Below, piece by piece: positions 39,301-46,700 of a stretch of 64,000 bases of DNA. The stretch comes from Ascidiella aspersa (Eukaryota): the NCBI GenBank assembly GCA_963924565.1, contig OZ004608.1:23746001-23810000 (forward strand). Reading direction: 5' to 3'. The notes under the pieces are model-generated. The model worked only from the letters and a program-made list of their open reading frames with translations. It made no database searches and was not told the origin of the DNA. Position 1 is the stretch's first letter. Each line of letters begins with the position of its first letter. The position numbers and the translations under genes are program-made.

Positions 39301-40477
39301 ATGGCAAATGATGAGGAAGACGAGGAATATGCCTGGATGCTGAATTTCAAAGAGTGTGAAAGTGATGTCACAAAATTTACAAATCCAACATCCAGTGGGA
39401 AAATTGCCATAACTCCGCCAACAACTAAATCAACAAAAGAGGCCACAACTACAAAATTATTGGAACGTTATGATGATATGCTAACGCAGCAAAAAATCAA
39501 TCAGGAAATTTTAAGAAAACTTAGGATTGTGCGATTACATAAGGAAAAAGTACGATAATCTTTTATTGCAAAATGGTTTGTTACTCTAAATTTTTTGTGG
39601 ATTTAAAACCTGTATATATACAAAGTCATACCTATAATCTGATAAAAGAGTAGGAAACTTTTTATAGTAGTCGTTTTCTTTTCTGCTTTACAAAACTGAT
39701 AAAAAAATCAACTTTATAATCACTTACAGCCACTGTGGAAAGCATGGAAAATACATAAAAAATAGAATTTTTCTCAATTTTAGTTATTTCCTTATCATAA
39801 AATTTGAGTGATCCTTATCATAAAATTTAAGTGGTGAGTGTAGTTTTAAAATGCAGTATTGATATCCTTAAATCATTAAAACTCACTCATTTCTTTAAAT
39901 AAGATAAAGGAAGACAGTTTATTTTTTTTTTGTACTTGTACGGCACACAAAAAAATGCACCACAAGAAGAAAGCTTTAGACTTCACCATCTATTACATTT
40001 ATTTCCTGTTTATACAAAATTTATAACTAAGAGTAGGTCTATATCGAGGGATGCACGGCCGCAGGTCGAAGATACAAGTGTTGGTGGCCAAACTTGTGTT
40101 TACCTAATGCGCAAATTGGAATTTTAAAACGTTATAGGCCAGGCAGACACCAGTCTCCAATTGCTGGTCATCAGATAGGCTATTGCAAGCCAAATCTATT
40201 AATTTTGAAATGCTCTGACAAATATGGGATGTGTAAGTCACGAGTTGGCTGAAATACACAATGCATTTCTTTGTAGAATAAAATGGAAACCCTGGAACAC
40301 CTAATAGCAAAATGGAGAACGGCCTGCCAAACAGCCTTAACACAACTTTTGGATTATGCACCTAAGGAGCCACCAACATCTATGGGTCAACTAATTACTT
40401 ACTTAGGCATTGATCCAAACTTAGTTCAATATAGTAAAGCAAATCTTTCATTTAAAAAGGTCAAACGAACAGTATAG
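39301..40477 (+). CDS. SFR1: Swi5-dependent recombination repair protein 1 (Sfr1/Mei5 family), ~149 aa
   Basis: Exons 39301-39549 and 40277-40477 (phase 0). LRKLRIVRLHKEK|NKMETLEHLIAKWRTACQTALTQL...SMGQLITYLGID matches the Mei5/SFR1 C-terminal domain (human [31 protein letters not shown]...SLTQLIDHYGLD). Confidence 0.9.
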
Positions 40478-40762: not shown

Positions 40763-43700
40763 TTATGCAGTGTTAATTCTATTGGTTTGTGTATTGAAAT
40801 GTAAATTATAAAAGTTTTGTGAGGTTGCCGTAGCATTGCTTTCTACACCACTGTTCATATTTTTCACATTTAATGCTGCCTTGTGAAGTTTTTCGATGTA
40901 TTCTGGTATACCTGAAATACAAATAGAACTTTAACTTGTTATTGTGACGAGTATCTTATGATTTAAAAGGTGTTAATGCCATTACCAGCTGAAACAACCC
41001 AAGAAGAAAGGGCAGCTGGAATTGAAGTCTGGGGGTCATCACAGTATGTCAACAAGTAGTCTATTCCTGGCTCATCAATGTTTGTGTGAGGTTTAATCAC
41101 CATGTCAGAGACATACAATGGAACACGAACATACCGCTTGTTTACAGCGCATTTAGGATGATCAACTGACCTTAAAATAAAAAAAATGTTTTTTGTAAAT
41201 AGCCAACCTAAATTTCGAGAATGGCAAAAATTAGATTTAAAATACCTATTCAACTCCAGGTTTGCTGGGAGTATTTTGGCCAATTGTTGTACAATATTTA
41301 ATTTAAGAATTAAAGTAGACGGTCATTACACTAGAAAAAAAAAACGAATCAACCCACAGTCTGACAATTTTGTTTATTATGTTTGGTCCAATTTATTGTG
41401 GATTGTTTTAAGTTTTATTCAATCGTGATGTTAATATATATAGAAACAGTGGTGGACCCGAGCGCTGCAGCATACTGTGTTTGACATGTTTTATAAGAAT
41501 GTGTGCAACTCAATTTAAGGTTTAAAATGGAAATTGACCGAAAACAATTTATAAATCTAACAACTAGTCGCACAATTTGTTTTTAAATCTATTAAGTATA
41601 ATAACAGTTTTAAATACCAAAAGTGAAATATATCTTGCATGATGTATAAAGTCATACTTTCGGTGGGCATTTAATGGCGTTATATTTAGCGGAAGATTCC
41701 CTTGTGAAAAAAAAGTCTTGAGTCTATGGTCACTACATTTGACACTTACAGCACAGACCACTTGAAAATTCCTTACACAGCCACACAATGTTTTGTAATA
41801 AAGCAAATCTATTAAGGTTGTTTCCATTATAATAAGACACAATATTTTTAGATAGCTTTAAGGGATATCTATTTAGCATAATTTGTCGGTCAGCTGGTAT
41901 GTTGACAAGTCGCAGGGGAGAGTGAGCTTTAAATATATAACCACAAAATTAAAAAAGAGGCTCATTCCAAACAAAAAGTAGAAGGAAATTCCCTTGGTAT
42001 GAGTGAAGTGCTTAGCTAAGTGTAGTCACACATTTCTTCATTTTAAATATAACTTACATTGGATATTTGCTGTATTACAATTTTGCAATCTACATTGCTT
42101 TAACAAAACAGTCTGCTTCAAAGTCTTAACAGCTTGACAAAAACGGCGAAGCAAGTTTTTTTTACAAAAAAATGGCTATTGTCATTTCACTATGCAAATT
42201 GTTGTATTTATTGCAACAGTCAATTTTTTTTTTAATTTCTGGACAATGCCAGTAGTCCAAGTATTTTATCATCTTAAGTTTAAGGTCACAAATTATAAAA
42301 TTAGTTAATACCCTATTAAACCTGAGCAATGCCAGGTATTTCTTACATCAAACACTATTTTTAAATCAGATGTAAAACTATTTTTTAAGCATAAACATAC
42401 CTTGCCAGTATTGCAAGAACATTAGCATCTTTGTAAATCTGAATTAAAACAAAACTTGTTAAATGTATGTAAATTTATTTAACCATATTCATGTGTTTTA
42501 ATATCTACAAAACATAAAACTTGTAAAAGTTCAAAAAAAAACTGTACTTTAAGTTGAATTTGCATAAAGTTTAAAGGCCATTTCATTTGACACAATAGGT
42601 TTTATGACATCACAATCCAGGCTTATAACGAAAATCATCAACAAAAAATTTAATAATAATATTTTTGTGAGAAAATGCACATTGTGTAAACAATTTTACA
42701 ACAATGGCGAAGAAAGCCAAAAGGAAAAGTACAAAGAAAAAGCAACCAAAACTTAAAAAGAGTAATGAGGACTATTTTGTAAGCAACTTTCTTAGGCAGC
42801 CAGGTAAGACAAGATCTGGAATAAGATACTCAAGGATTACAAACAGTAAAGCTTCGGCTAAATTAATTTTTGGTTCTCTTTTGTCTTTGACAAGTTTATC
42901 TAATAAGCCAACAAAGTTAGAGACTGCGAAGGACCAGTGCAGCTGTAAGCAATGCAAAGATAACAGAAGCAAAACTGTCACCAGCAACCATAGTGGACTG
43001 AGTCTTATGCTAAAAAGTGAAGGGAATTCTAATTCTTTGCCAAATCTTGCCAAATCAATGCCAAGTGCAGTTTTACCTAAACACAGACAGAGTGCAGACA
43101 GCAAGTATTGTGATTGCTATGAATGTACAGGCCTGATCGACGTAAAAGATGTGCCAAGCCAACAAAAGGGAATGTTACAACAAAGCATGGGGGCCATATC
43201 TTGTGAAGATAACAACAACTATGGTTTGTCTGGTGACCAGCAATATATTTCAAAAAACTTATTGACAAGAAATAGCTCAGATATGAAAATGCACAGTGTA
43301 ACAAAACTTAAGCAACCTACAAGCAACCATCAAAAACGCCAGAAAAAGCCTAAAGAGAGCAGCACAAAAGTCCAAAGACTGAAACACCCACTTGAAAAAT
43401 GCAAACCTAGAAGATACAAAAAGAAAGTCAAAATGGTACAAACAAATATGAAACAGTCCCACAAGGGGAAAACAAGGAAAGGAAAGCCTACTAAATCACT
43501 CCTAAAGTTAGTTTTAAAGAAAAAATCATCAATTAGACAAAAAAATGGAAAGGTAAGCCCACAAAAACCAAAGGAACAACAGGCCTGCACATGTTGCCAG
43601 CGATTTCAAAACATAATTCGGCAAATTGGCAAGGCACATAATTCACAAGTTAGTTTAAATAAAAGAAGATCAAAGTCTGCTGGAAATATAGCAAATCAGT

Positions 43701-46700
43701 ACCTACAATGCACCAAATCTGGTTGTAGTGAAACACCATTTGCCAGTGCAGGATATAACCATATGGACAAGACAAAGAATATTAAGCGTAGTCAATCCGT
43801 TAAAAAGATGGAACTCAATGAAAGTAGAAATGTTACTCCAGTATTAACTCGGTCCATTCAACATTTAAAACAAACTGCTATTAGCAAAAAAAGTCAACAT
43901 AAGAAAAAACAAAAAAACTACACAAGGGTAAAAAAAAAGCTGGGTGCCAAGCAACTGCAGCTGAAACCCCAAAAGGTAGGGAATATAAAGTCCACCAAAC
44001 GACAAACAGTGAAGTGGGTTTTGCTCACAGACAAGTTAATCAAAGCCTTGAAAGACAAAGCAAAACAAACTGCTCAACAAAACAAAGCCAAACAAAACAA
44101 AGAAAGAGGTATTAAAGAGCAAATGAAACAAGATATAGCACCCACACCAAGCTGGGGGTATGGATCAAAAAGTAGCCATAAAAGAGAGTCTAGCAGTAAC
44201 AAGTATCTCCGGAGTTCTTTGTCAACAACATTACAGGTTGTTAACAGTACACGGCAACAAAATTCTGGCACAAATGACATTCCTCGCACACCTTTTCCCA
44301 GTTCGAAAATGCCAACATACATTGCAATGGTAAAAACAGCTATTCGTGATTTGACACCATATAGGATGACTGGAAAGGAAGCCATTTCCAAGTAACTATA
44401 AATTATGTTTAGGAAATTTCTATTTTTAAAGCTAATGAATAAAAATATATATTCAACAGGTATATTCAAATAAGGTACCATATTCAAAATGATGTTTTGC
44501 TGAGATACATTTTGAAATGGATGGTTGATATGAAAATAACCAAATTGAAAAATGGGAATTATTACTTCAGTGGAAAAAGGTAAGTGCGGTTGTAAATTCC
44601 ATTAATTATTCGTTAAAAAAACGTTAAAAAAAACACTTTTTGTTATATATTTAGGCTAATTAAAAAACACACAGTAGCAGTTTTAAGCAAGTCTCAGAAG
44701 AAAAGAAAGAAGAAAAAGAGGTAAGAACACAGTAAAGGTTTTTGTTCTTAATAGCAAACTTAAAATATTTTTTACTTCCAGAAGAAAAGCAAAAAAGAAG
44801 CGAAAGTCTTCAAAAGTAAGTAAACTGACCAAGGTAGGTAAACCAATTCACAACGGCTGTTTCTTTAAACTCTTAGCAAGGTGGGTAATGCATAACTTTA
44901 CAAAACTCAAAACGAGGGGCGTGCAAATCACTAAATTTTTAAACCTTTGAACATAAACAATGTGTTTTTGTGATATATATTTGTATTTCATACCACCAAG
45001 AATAAACAGCCTTATCATTTACAAGGCTAAAAATAGGATTAGAATTGATATAACAGTTTAACTGTCTTAATAGTAAATCCTGTATGTAGAAAAAGTCAAA
45101 ACGAAAAAAAGGAAAGGGAAAGAAAAAGAAAAGAAAGTGCACATGTTCACAGCAGAAAAATGCAACTAAAAACAGAGTGAAACTTCGTTCCCATTATATA
45201 AGAAAGCATGGAAAAATTTACAAACAAGATGAATATGTTTAAATACCAACCTCTTGGCGTCTAATGTAAATGTACTCTCTTGCATTGAACGGATACTGAA
45301 AACAAATAAAAAACAAATAAGTTACATTGGATGTTTTACGGGTGGCACCAAATGTCATAACTACTGACAAAGATTGAAATTCAACTCAGATCAGGTTTAG
45401 TACACAAATGTGTTGTGATGATGCCACCAGACCTATTTTAAAATGGTAAAGATTAATAGGTTCTAGAAGTTTAGCACCTAGCCCACAATATTAATTTGCT
45501 TATAAGTTGAGATAATTTATTCAAGGAACGTTGAGATACCGAATGTCACTGCAGGCCTGATTTTTTAGCTTCATTGCTTCCACGAAAATGTGTATAGATA
45601 GACTGAAGTTACTCCCTAAACTTTATGGTCAATCTTGGTGTATTTACAAATTCTCAAAAATAACTTACCGGAAAATATGCAAGCCAGCGAAGAACTTGTT
45701 CACCAGTACTTTTGTTTTCATCAACAATATCAATATCAAGAGCAAGATTATCCCATTTTTTGCGATATTCAACGTCTGATTGAACCGCAAAAAATTGTCT
45801 TGCAGTTACATCAAAAAATCTTCCAAACACTACATGTAATTTGGAAGTTTTAAAATTTAAAATATTACACATATGTTTACCTTAATTTATTGTGATATTA
45901 TAAAAGTTTATTTAAAATTTTGGCAATGTTTAGTTTTTACTTCATTTGATCAAGTTAAGATTTAGGGATATCAAACAAGAGAATCATTATTTGTTACTTT
46001 TGATTACAATCGCATACCAGTAAGCAATTAAATTAGGCAGGCAAAATAACATTGTCCGGATTTATGCAAGAAGTGTGTACAGCTAACTCAGGGGTGGACC
46101 CCTTGAGAATATGTGAAGGTATAATTTTAAAAATCAAATATTTCAGTACCACAACTTTATTGCAAAGGCGGTACAGATTGGACAGAACACGGAAAATGGC
46201 ATCAACTAAATTAGGCGGAAAATAATATGATCAGGAAGAGAGTTACTATACAAATGTTTTGCTCATATTTTAAAGATGGATGCATTAGATTTAATTGGAA
46301 ATATGAATTAAGTTTGCAAAACATTTGTTTAAAAGAGTACCATAGCGCACATTGCACCCTTTGTCTAAGTTAGAAGTGCAAGCATATTAACTAAGTCACA
46401 CCTAGCTGTTTTTTATTTAGTTGCCTTACAAAAAAGTTAGGATAGAGTTGAAGATGCGTTGTTTAATTAGCACAAAAAATGAAAAAAAATATTTTAAGAA
46501 GACTAAGCCGAATTAGCTTCCTTGGTGGGCCGTTTTTGTTATGAATAATAACACAGCTAACTTATTTAGTGAAATTTGTACAATGCATGCCAATCTAGGG
46601 TTGTCCAACATAATGTTTGCATTCCACCACAAAGCATCAGATGAAAAATAAAACCTACCTTTATACTGCATGTATTCAGTGTTCTTATACGGAAGTTTCC

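Follow-up and report, generated by a model that had tools for sequence, protein, structure and literature searches.

Linker histones of the H1/H5 type (Pfam family Linker_histone, PF00538) share a tripartite layout in which a short N-terminal tail and a Lys-rich C-terminal domain of ~100 amino acids (aa) flank a globular centre, the H15 domain, which folds as a winged helix. Protamine-like (PL) proteins join an H1-related winged helix to a high content of Lys and Arg, and true protamines are Arg-rich, shorter than ~100 aa and devoid of a globular domain. Discussion of the transition from H1 to protamine-like sperm proteins has centred on tunicates. TD02, an H1-like protein from Ciona testis, is found in late spermatid nuclei and in those of sperm (PMC11592721). 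Here we describe a gene of the ascidian Ascidiella aspersa encoding a giant basic protein with an H15 domain near its C-terminal end. The gene lies in a window of 64,000 nucleotides (assembly GCA_963924565.1, contig OZ004608.1, positions 23,746,001 to 23,810,000 of the forward strand), and positions given without a contig are those of the window. It is a single-copy, five-exon gene nested in another gene, and its basic H15 product of ~686 residues probably acts as a cell-type-restricted factor in chromatin compaction or architecture.

An earlier note, made from the letters of the window alone, had joined a 563-codon open reading frame (ORF) to four short downstream exons. The ORF is present at 42704-44395 on the plus strand, in DNA of ~33% G+C, and the predicted gene model agrees with the RNA at all four splice sites. 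In a stranded RNA-seq run of the same species (X5), plus-strand RNA spans 42676-~45294 in five exons; exon 1 has a depth of 55-153, and molecule ends pile up at 42676 (5') and lie at 45294 (3'). Junction reads with GT..AG introns join 44391/44460, the joint singled out in that note (n=45), 44579/44655 (n=26) and 44720/44782 (n=25). The fourth intron, 44816-45089, is represented by 10 loose-end reads that leave 44815 with an overhang equal to the sequence from 45090 (joint 44815/45090); the read tool skipped a repeat at this point. In the sequence, the intron-split codons read AA/G (K), AG/G (R) and AG/A (R). Translated one by one, the exons are in frame, exon 2 giving YIQIRYHIQNDVLLRYILKWMVDMKITKLKNGNYYFSGK, exon 3 LIKKHTVAVLSKSQKKRKKKK and exon 5 KKSKRKKGKGKKKKRKCTCSQQ...GKIYKQDEYV followed by the stop codon. 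The whole gene is nested in a 2,812-base intron (42439-45250) of a minus-strand gene, and a whole-genome search found it in single copy. Exon 1 carries eight polymorphisms among the runs, four synonymous and four nonsynonymous, and no frame-breaking variant at appreciable frequency was seen there among the runs. An extra A after 43538, present in 11/103 RNA reads and 0 DNA contigs, is probably a sequencing slip. Run X4, labelled as another organism (organism B), holds pieces of 42651-45852, nearly all at 99% identity or more, which points to a labelling error, a very close relative or cross-contamination.

The protein belongs to a conserved family. A full HMMER search with exon 1 recovered 11 relatives among 1.84 billion representatives (E 2.4e-26 to 6.8e-4), and 8 of these 11 are ORFs that end exactly where Ascidiella exon 1 ends (...AISK or ...AIAK), which fits an intron of identical position in other species. 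Spliced products that contain the whole domain and the tail are P0002, P0006 and P0009, together with the cluster members P0015 and P0017. Two relatives carry names: Clavelina lepadiformis XP_076812566.1, an 'uncharacterized protein LOC143459347', and Ciona intestinalis F6SSF8 (P0009), which is automatically labelled 'H15 domain-containing protein' in UniProt and covers a fragment of XP_002126175.3, a protein with the automatic name 'serine/arginine repetitive matrix protein 5'. Besides the match of exon 1 (Table 1), exon 2 is 67% identical to the full-length Ciona protein P0017 and the last 34 aa are 68% identical. On these grounds the Ascidiella protein is judged to be the orthologue of Ciona XP_002126175.3 and Clavelina LOC143459347. 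Within the reach of this search, the family is confined to ascidian-type sequences. A word-index protein search returned nothing, but it also missed known family members, as low-complexity words swamp the index.

Searches with the Ascidiella model were run exon by exon, as separate pieces, and the identity of the winged helix was approached through its paralogues and orthologues. Searched genome-wide, the 39 residues of exon 2 match, besides themselves, only C2:36891792 (E 9.5e-4) and C2:36889637 (E 0.028), two sites that score 42.2 and 43.5 bits with Linker_histone (gathering score 22.4 bits) and whose ORFs score 39.6 and 40.4 bits. With residues 67-105 of one of these products, L045, exon 2 aligns without a gap (BLASTP, 31% identity, 67% positives, 39.3 bits, E 1e-10). 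The H15 part of exon 1 is collinear with residues 40-66 of the same protein, with 27 residues in both cases between a conserved Pro and the exon end. BLASTP between L045 and the exon-1 tail picked the wrong segment, and collinearity was taken from the spacing. Among the spliced orthologues, P0002 and P0014 score 26.9 bits with Linker_histone, P0006 27.2 bits and P0015 28.8 bits, and the cut-off is thus passed by Clavelina XP_076812566.1 and two unnamed cDNA products.

Structural comparisons, made with the orthologues, point the same way. Against PDB, profile A3, built from four orthologues of the giant family, matches only H5/H1.0 chains (E 3.8e-5 to 0.033; 8.1e-5 for the isolated globular domain 1hst_A), and a profile to which the two PL-like paralogues were added matches H5/H1.0 at 7.9e-12 to 1.5e-5. 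Beyond H1/H5, profile A1 matches HP1BP3 weakly (E 0.075). In the AlphaFold model of Ciona P0009, residues 111-178 have a predicted local distance difference test (pLDDT) score of 82-88 and form helix-helix-helix-hairpin, the three helices plus beta hairpin of a winged helix; the structural fit is best to H1.0, H1.4 and H5. Language-model neighbours of the Ciona orthologue are H15 clusters (scores 0.77-0.79), among them plant HMG-Y-related proteins, and are taken as a lead only. The paralogue matches, the Pfam and profile scores of the orthologues and the orthologue fold model together, though indirectly, settle the H15 identity. The domain is judged to be of a divergent sub-type: it is split by a phase-2 intron, and its wing is ~4 residues shorter than usual and has no GxGASG. 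Its first half is the best conserved block of the whole family, with the invariant positions lying around helix 1.

The closest H15 relatives in the genome, in both trees and genome searches, are not the canonical H1 genes but L045:1303-1827 (174 aa) and L046:1315-1938 (207 aa), tandem single-exon H1-like genes at G000:C2:36.889-36.892 Mb. Both encode a short acidic N-terminal end, a Pfam-positive H15 domain and a poly-K/R tail ending in Arg, with a run of ~24 Lys in one tail and (KRKKN)n repeats in the other. In an unrooted domain tree of 11 short sequences, in which orthologues stand in for the split Ascidiella domain, the giant family and L045/L046 separate from five other H1 domains of the same genome with support of 93/92. 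These two small genes are closer in appearance to classical protamine-like sperm proteins than the giant protein is, and are good candidates for the true protamine-like sperm proteins of the species. Elsewhere in the genome, at G000:C8:18.246-18.298 Mb (L001-L007), seven identical canonical H1 globular domains of 102.8 bits each are spaced ~4.6-17 kb apart and presumably belong to the replication-dependent histone repeat.

Upstream of the domain stretches an arm of ~536 residues, 22% of them Lys or Arg. The exon-1 product as a whole contains 17.1% Lys, 12.1% Ser, 8.0% Gln, 5.3% Arg and 13 Cys, with a net charge of +95. Three Cys clusters lie in the arm (Table 1) and a fourth, CTCS, in the tail. 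When the exon-1 product was shuffled, three CxC were reached in 33/20,000 trials and two CxCxxC in 0/20,000. Conservation was read from an alignment of 12 proteins, in which cluster 2 is found, outside Ascidiella, only in P0001, Clavelina and Ciona. The model of the exon-1 product has a mean pLDDT of 48.6 and is mostly of low confidence, so that most of the arm is predicted to be disordered; confident helices coincide with the conserved islands. Cluster 3 caps the N-terminal end of a predicted helix (296-338) whose pLDDT is 71-83 at the start and falls to ~58. The conserved islands of the arm are FVSNFLxQPGKTRSG, CxCxxC, SLLKxVLK, CxCC with its helix, the KWxLLT helix and the PxΦ(S/R)A(G/R) repeats. 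Pfam found no zinc finger or other known family in the arm, either in Ascidiella exon 1 or in the orthologues, and a profile of the arm had no match in PDB. A Pfam CH_2 'sperm' match to the exon-1 ORF (14.5 bits against a cut-off of 27) falls in a Lys-rich stretch and was dismissed as chance.

The repeated motif is present in 3-7 copies per protein in most members of P0001-P0017, and one copy stands directly before the H15 domain in every case. With looser letters, the Ascidiella protein has three copies, at 43736-43756, 44141-44161 and 44291-44311. The form P-x-[PVI]-[SR]-A-[GR] gives 21 strict matches in the 12 proteins where 0.055 are expected, a count that is descriptive, as the motif was defined after the alignment had been seen. 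That PxVSAG recalls the PxVxL-type HP1-binding motif, with Ala in place of Leu, is an idea only. At the other end of the protein, the H15 domain is followed by ~83 residues, of which ~45 form a Lys/Arg-rich tract; a conserved 34-residue C-terminal motif that opens with CxC comes next. The tail CxC is kept in 3/4 spliced orthologues, and the last 30 residues (YIRKxGKIYKQ[DE]EY[VI]) are almost the same in Ciona, Clavelina and Ascidiella, but not in P0015 or P0006.

Table 1. Features of the nested gene and of the neighbouring host exons, in window positions; residue numbers are those of the giant protein
Feature	Position	Strand	Remarks
Exon 1	42676..44391	+	ATG at 42704; residues 1-562 plus two bases of codon 563; N-terminal arm and first half of H15 domain; matches Ciona P0017 (E 5e-33)
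Cys cluster 1, CSCKQC, 79-84 (C79, C81, C84)	42938..42955	+	Invariant in 12/12; at start of predicted helix 82-90
Cys cluster 2, CDCYEC, 136-141 (C136, C138, C141)	43109..43126	+	Ascidiella, P0001, P0002 and P0017 only; absent from the other 8
Island SLLKLVLKK (265-273)	43496..43522	+	L266, L267 and L271 invariant, S265 and K272 nearly so; predicted helix 266-275
Cys cluster 3, CTCC, 295-298 (C295, C297, C298)	43586..43597	+	C295 and C298 invariant; C297 in 11/12
Conserved long helix (434-475), starting KWVLLTDKLIKALK	44003..44128	+	pLDDT 82-90; KWxLLT..IKxLK block conserved
First half of H15 domain, PTYIAMVKTAIRDLTPYRMTGKEAISK	44312..44391	+	Helix 1 and start of helix 2; follows PFPSSK motif; 11 invariant columns
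Exon 2	44460..44579	+	Second half of H15 domain, from within helix 2 through helix 3 to the short wing KLKNGNYYF
Exon 3	44655..44720	+	Linker and start of Lys/Arg tract; junction reads, translation
Exon 4	44782..44815	+	Lys/Arg tract RKAKKKRKSSK; junction reads, loose ends, translation
Exon 5	45090..45294	+	Remainder of Lys tract; CTC (45138-45146); C-terminal motif up to 45239; stop codon 45240-45242
3' untranslated region	stop to ~45294	+	In exon 5
Host exon flanking the nested gene	42399..42438	-	Joint 42438/45251 (CT..AC), 41 reads; reads leave edge at 42399
Small host exon, 45 bases	45251..45295	-	Joints 42438/45251 and 45295/45669
Host exon, part of START domain (PCTP group)	45669..45872	-	Joint 45295/45669; boundary 45669 read-backed, 45872 the end of the translated ORF

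Expression of the gene depends on the sample. In X5 the nested gene has a depth of ~118 and its host ~44, a difference of about threefold. A second set of contigs, X3, holds spliced host mRNA and is therefore RNA; here the nested gene stands at ~4 and the host at ~314. The nested/host ratio thus differs ~200-fold between two RNA samples, neither of which carries a tissue label, as measured by contig word depth, which is a poor gauge of expression. The shift argues for restricted over uniform expression.

How the protein might work can be sketched from its parts. It would be nuclear, and its H15 domain would dock on linker or nucleosomal DNA, while the Lys/Arg tract would neutralise DNA charge in the manner of the H1 C-terminal domain. 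There is a CxxC pair in each of clusters 1 and 3, and both sit at helix starts, ~210 residues apart across a variable spacer. Their nearly invariant Cys would most probably coordinate zinc, which would connect distant islands of the arm or link one molecule to another; alternatively they may form disulfides or intermolecular bridges. The short motifs of the arm may recruit partners, and the repeated motif could be a docking or a cleavage site. The germ line would be the most likely site of action.

Several observations weigh against this picture of a chromatin compaction or architecture factor, in addition to the crudeness of the depth measure and the retrospective definition of the repeated motif. 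The layout is the reverse of that of H1, with a huge N-terminal arm and a short C-terminal tail. Pfam gave neither a Linker_histone nor a Forkhead match on the exon-1 ORF and the separate domain halves, and a six-frame scan of the genome with Linker_histone found 18 matches elsewhere and none at the locus. At 21.8 bits, the Ciona fragment P0009 falls slightly short of the gathering score, and full-length Ciona P0017 has no Pfam match. The Pfam matches of the orthologues end at profile position 64/74 and the wing is shortened, so H1-like binding at the nucleosome dyad cannot be assumed. DNA binding, zinc binding and a nuclear site are all putative.

The protein might, as a tentative alternative, be a sperm nuclear basic protein, derived from H1, made in spermatids and condensing chromatin with zinc or disulfide cross-links at its Cys clusters. 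Its H15 domain falls together with those of the two small genes of protamine-like H1 architecture in the same genome, the exon-1 product is very basic, the Cys clusters are conserved, expression is strongly sample-dependent, and TD02 provides an example of an H1-like Ciona testis protein that enters late spermatid and sperm nuclei. Against this, the RNA runs have no tissue label, the paper on TD02 gives no gene identity by which it could be linked to the giant family (PMC11592721), and the accessions of the family were in no paper found by a literature search. Moreover, small genes of the L045/L046 type suit a classical protamine-like role better, and a 686-aa protein with a Ser/Gln-rich arm of 22% Lys plus Arg is unlike the known sperm nuclear basic proteins. 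The strong form of this idea is unlikely: an ascidian-specific giant relative of H1, restricted to the germ line, with a disordered arm that zinc pins at clusters 1 and 3 and that bears PxΦSAG repeats for docking or cleavage, would condense spermatid chromatin by cross-linking or as the precursor of a small protamine-like protein. A somewhat doubtful reading is that the protein is a linker-histone variant of the oocyte or embryo, or else an architectural protein of somatic chromatin in general, comparable to HP1BP3 and the plant H15 proteins, and has no part in sperm. The architecture is not that of H1, HP1BP3 was the weak PDB match to profile A1, and the adult is a hermaphrodite, so gonad-rich RNA could come from ovary or testis. 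However, the extensions of the embryonic H1 variants B4, H1oo and BigH1 are less basic or acidic, unlike the strongly basic arm seen here; the nearest paralogues are protamine-like; and the ~200-fold dependence on the sample argues against a housekeeping role.

Processing of the protein is a further alternative, and a very unlikely one. A precursor cut at the repeated PxΦSA(G/R), the last copy of which abuts H15 helix 1, would release a product of ~150 aa consisting of the H15 domain and the Lys tail and resembling L045/L046. Precursors are known for some mollusc protamine-like proteins and for cephalopod protamines, and the motif occurs far above chance with one copy always directly before the domain. 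On the other hand, the motif might just as well serve in binding, and the arm has invariant islands of its own that argue for a function in the mature protein. That the winged helix comes instead from a forkhead or another winged-helix transcription factor and has degenerated is hardly credible. The only PDB match of the exon-1 tail is helix 1 of FOXL2 (E 1.6), and helix 1 of forkhead and H15 cross-match in the genome (C4:2677060). Yet a six-frame search with Pfam Forkhead (PF00250), run to E 10, detected 42 other pieces and nothing at the locus, and against profiles from the same genome the exon-1 tail, through helix 1 only, scores 10.2 bits with H15 and 4.3 bits with forkhead. The orthologues match only Linker_histone, their profiles match only H5/H1.0 and, weakly, HP1BP3, and there is no forkhead among the structural matches listed. 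Forkhead identity was rejected on the missing Forkhead match at the locus, the lower profile score, the Linker_histone matches of the orthologues and the profile matches to H5/H1.0 and, weakly, HP1BP3. The cross-match itself is seen in a single exon at C4:2677030-2677167 (-), to which Linker_histone gives 19.4 bits and Forkhead 57.7 bits, and it means that weak half-domain matches are not to be trusted.

The earlier note had read the locus as an undescribed sperm chromatin protein or a processed precursor, combining H1 nucleosome binding with zinc or disulfide cross-linking. Its gene model, winged helix, Lys tail, Cys conservation and non-uniform expression hold up; 'undescribed' was only half right. 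The H1/H5-type winged helix is upheld by paralogues, orthologues, profiles and the orthologue fold, although the separate exon pieces have no Pfam match. The wing, said to read KLKNGNYYF in place of GxGASGSF, does lack GxGASG and is short, and the Lys-rich tail announced after the domain corresponds to the ~45-residue Lys/Arg tract. The Cys clusters were found at the positions of their motifs, and the composition of the exon-1 product bears out a Lys/Gln/Ser-rich arm. Conservation of the clusters in orthologues had been named beforehand as a test; clusters 1 and 3 are essentially invariant in the 12 proteins, but cluster 2 and the tail CxC are only partly kept. Judged by the depths in X5 and X3, expression is neither absent nor uniform. 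As to novelty, a literature search returned no paper on the family, its Ciona and Clavelina accessions or the automatic Ciona name, but the Ciona and Clavelina models were already in NCBI and UniProt, one of them labelled H15. This is apparently a tunicate family that is present in databases and for which no study was found, and its conserved H15 architecture is apparently new and not that of a canonical linker histone.

The host gene contributes three exons to the neighbourhood (Table 1). The exon furthest from the nested gene matches PCTP (1ln1_A, E 0.03) and STARD10 (E 0.045) weakly in a phmmer search of PDB, and a six-frame Pfam START scan of the genome gave no match within the window. The 3' end of the nested gene (~45294) is antisense to the small host exon at 45251-45295, so that the mature mRNAs are complementary over ~44 bases, and 8 bases separate the nested stop codon from that exon. 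In the same region, the plus-strand ORFs 39301-39558 and 40283-40477, one with ...LRIVRLHKEK and the other with LEHLIAKWRTACQTALTQLL...LGIDPNLVQY, look like exons of another plus-strand gene, possibly one for a SFR1/MEI5-type recombination protein.

A family conserved across ascidians, with an H15 sub-type shared with small protamine-like genes and a reversed H1 layout, offers a concrete candidate for redeployment of the H15 domain in germline or other specialised chromatin. If the strong germline version were true, the protein would be, in the sister group of vertebrates, a missing intermediate form that connects H1 with protamine-like proteins. If it is an ordinary somatic chromatin protein, it adds a lineage-specific H15 architecture and little more.

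Set against the linker histones H1/H5, including such germline variants as H1t, H1T2/H1FNT, HILS1, H1oo and Drosophila BigH1, the giant protein has a homologous three-helix winged helix and, like them, a Lys/Arg-rich tract C-terminal to it. The differences lie in nearly everything else. Its domain comes after an arm of ~536 residues, compared with an H1 N-terminal tail of 20-40, its basic tail is only ~45 residues long and ends in the non-H1 motif CxC...YIRKxGKIYKQ[DE]EY[VI], the short wing and the phase-2 intron within the domain set it apart, and the arm carries conserved Cys clusters. The tripartite H1 layout is therefore absent, and the protein is an H15-domain protein rather than a canonical linker histone. 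Vertebrate HP1BP3 (three H15 domains), the plant HMGA-like proteins and Smh/TRB likewise place H15 inside a larger chromatin-binding protein, but the giant has a single H15 domain, no AT-hook or Myb domain and no detectable sequence relation to them outside H15. To the mammalian P1/P2 protamines the resemblance is one of idea only, a basic protein whose conserved Cys could bridge molecules. Those protamines are Arg-rich, under 100 aa and lack a winged helix, whereas the giant protein is Lys-rich (Lys 17.1%, Arg 5.3%) and ~686 aa long, possesses a winged helix, and has a Cys chemistry that is putative. The tunicate and bivalve H1-derived PL proteins, represented here by L045/L046, have the same H15 sub-type, with the RYH..ND..W..GK pattern and a short wing, and Lys/Arg tails. 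Identity over exon 2 is 31%, and the two groups fall together in the 93/92 split. The small proteins (174-207 aa, single-exon), however, have a short acidic N-terminal end and a long poly-K/R tail, and lack the arm, the Cys clusters and any conserved motif at the C-terminal end. Of L045, L046 and TD02, it is TD02 alone whose role in sperm has been demonstrated, and its gene identity is not given (PMC11592721). As for the two marks of a PL protein, the H15 domain of the giant is related to the PL-like paralogues; its tail is rich in Lys and Arg, but its arm is only 22% Lys plus Arg, with 12% Ser and 8% Gln.

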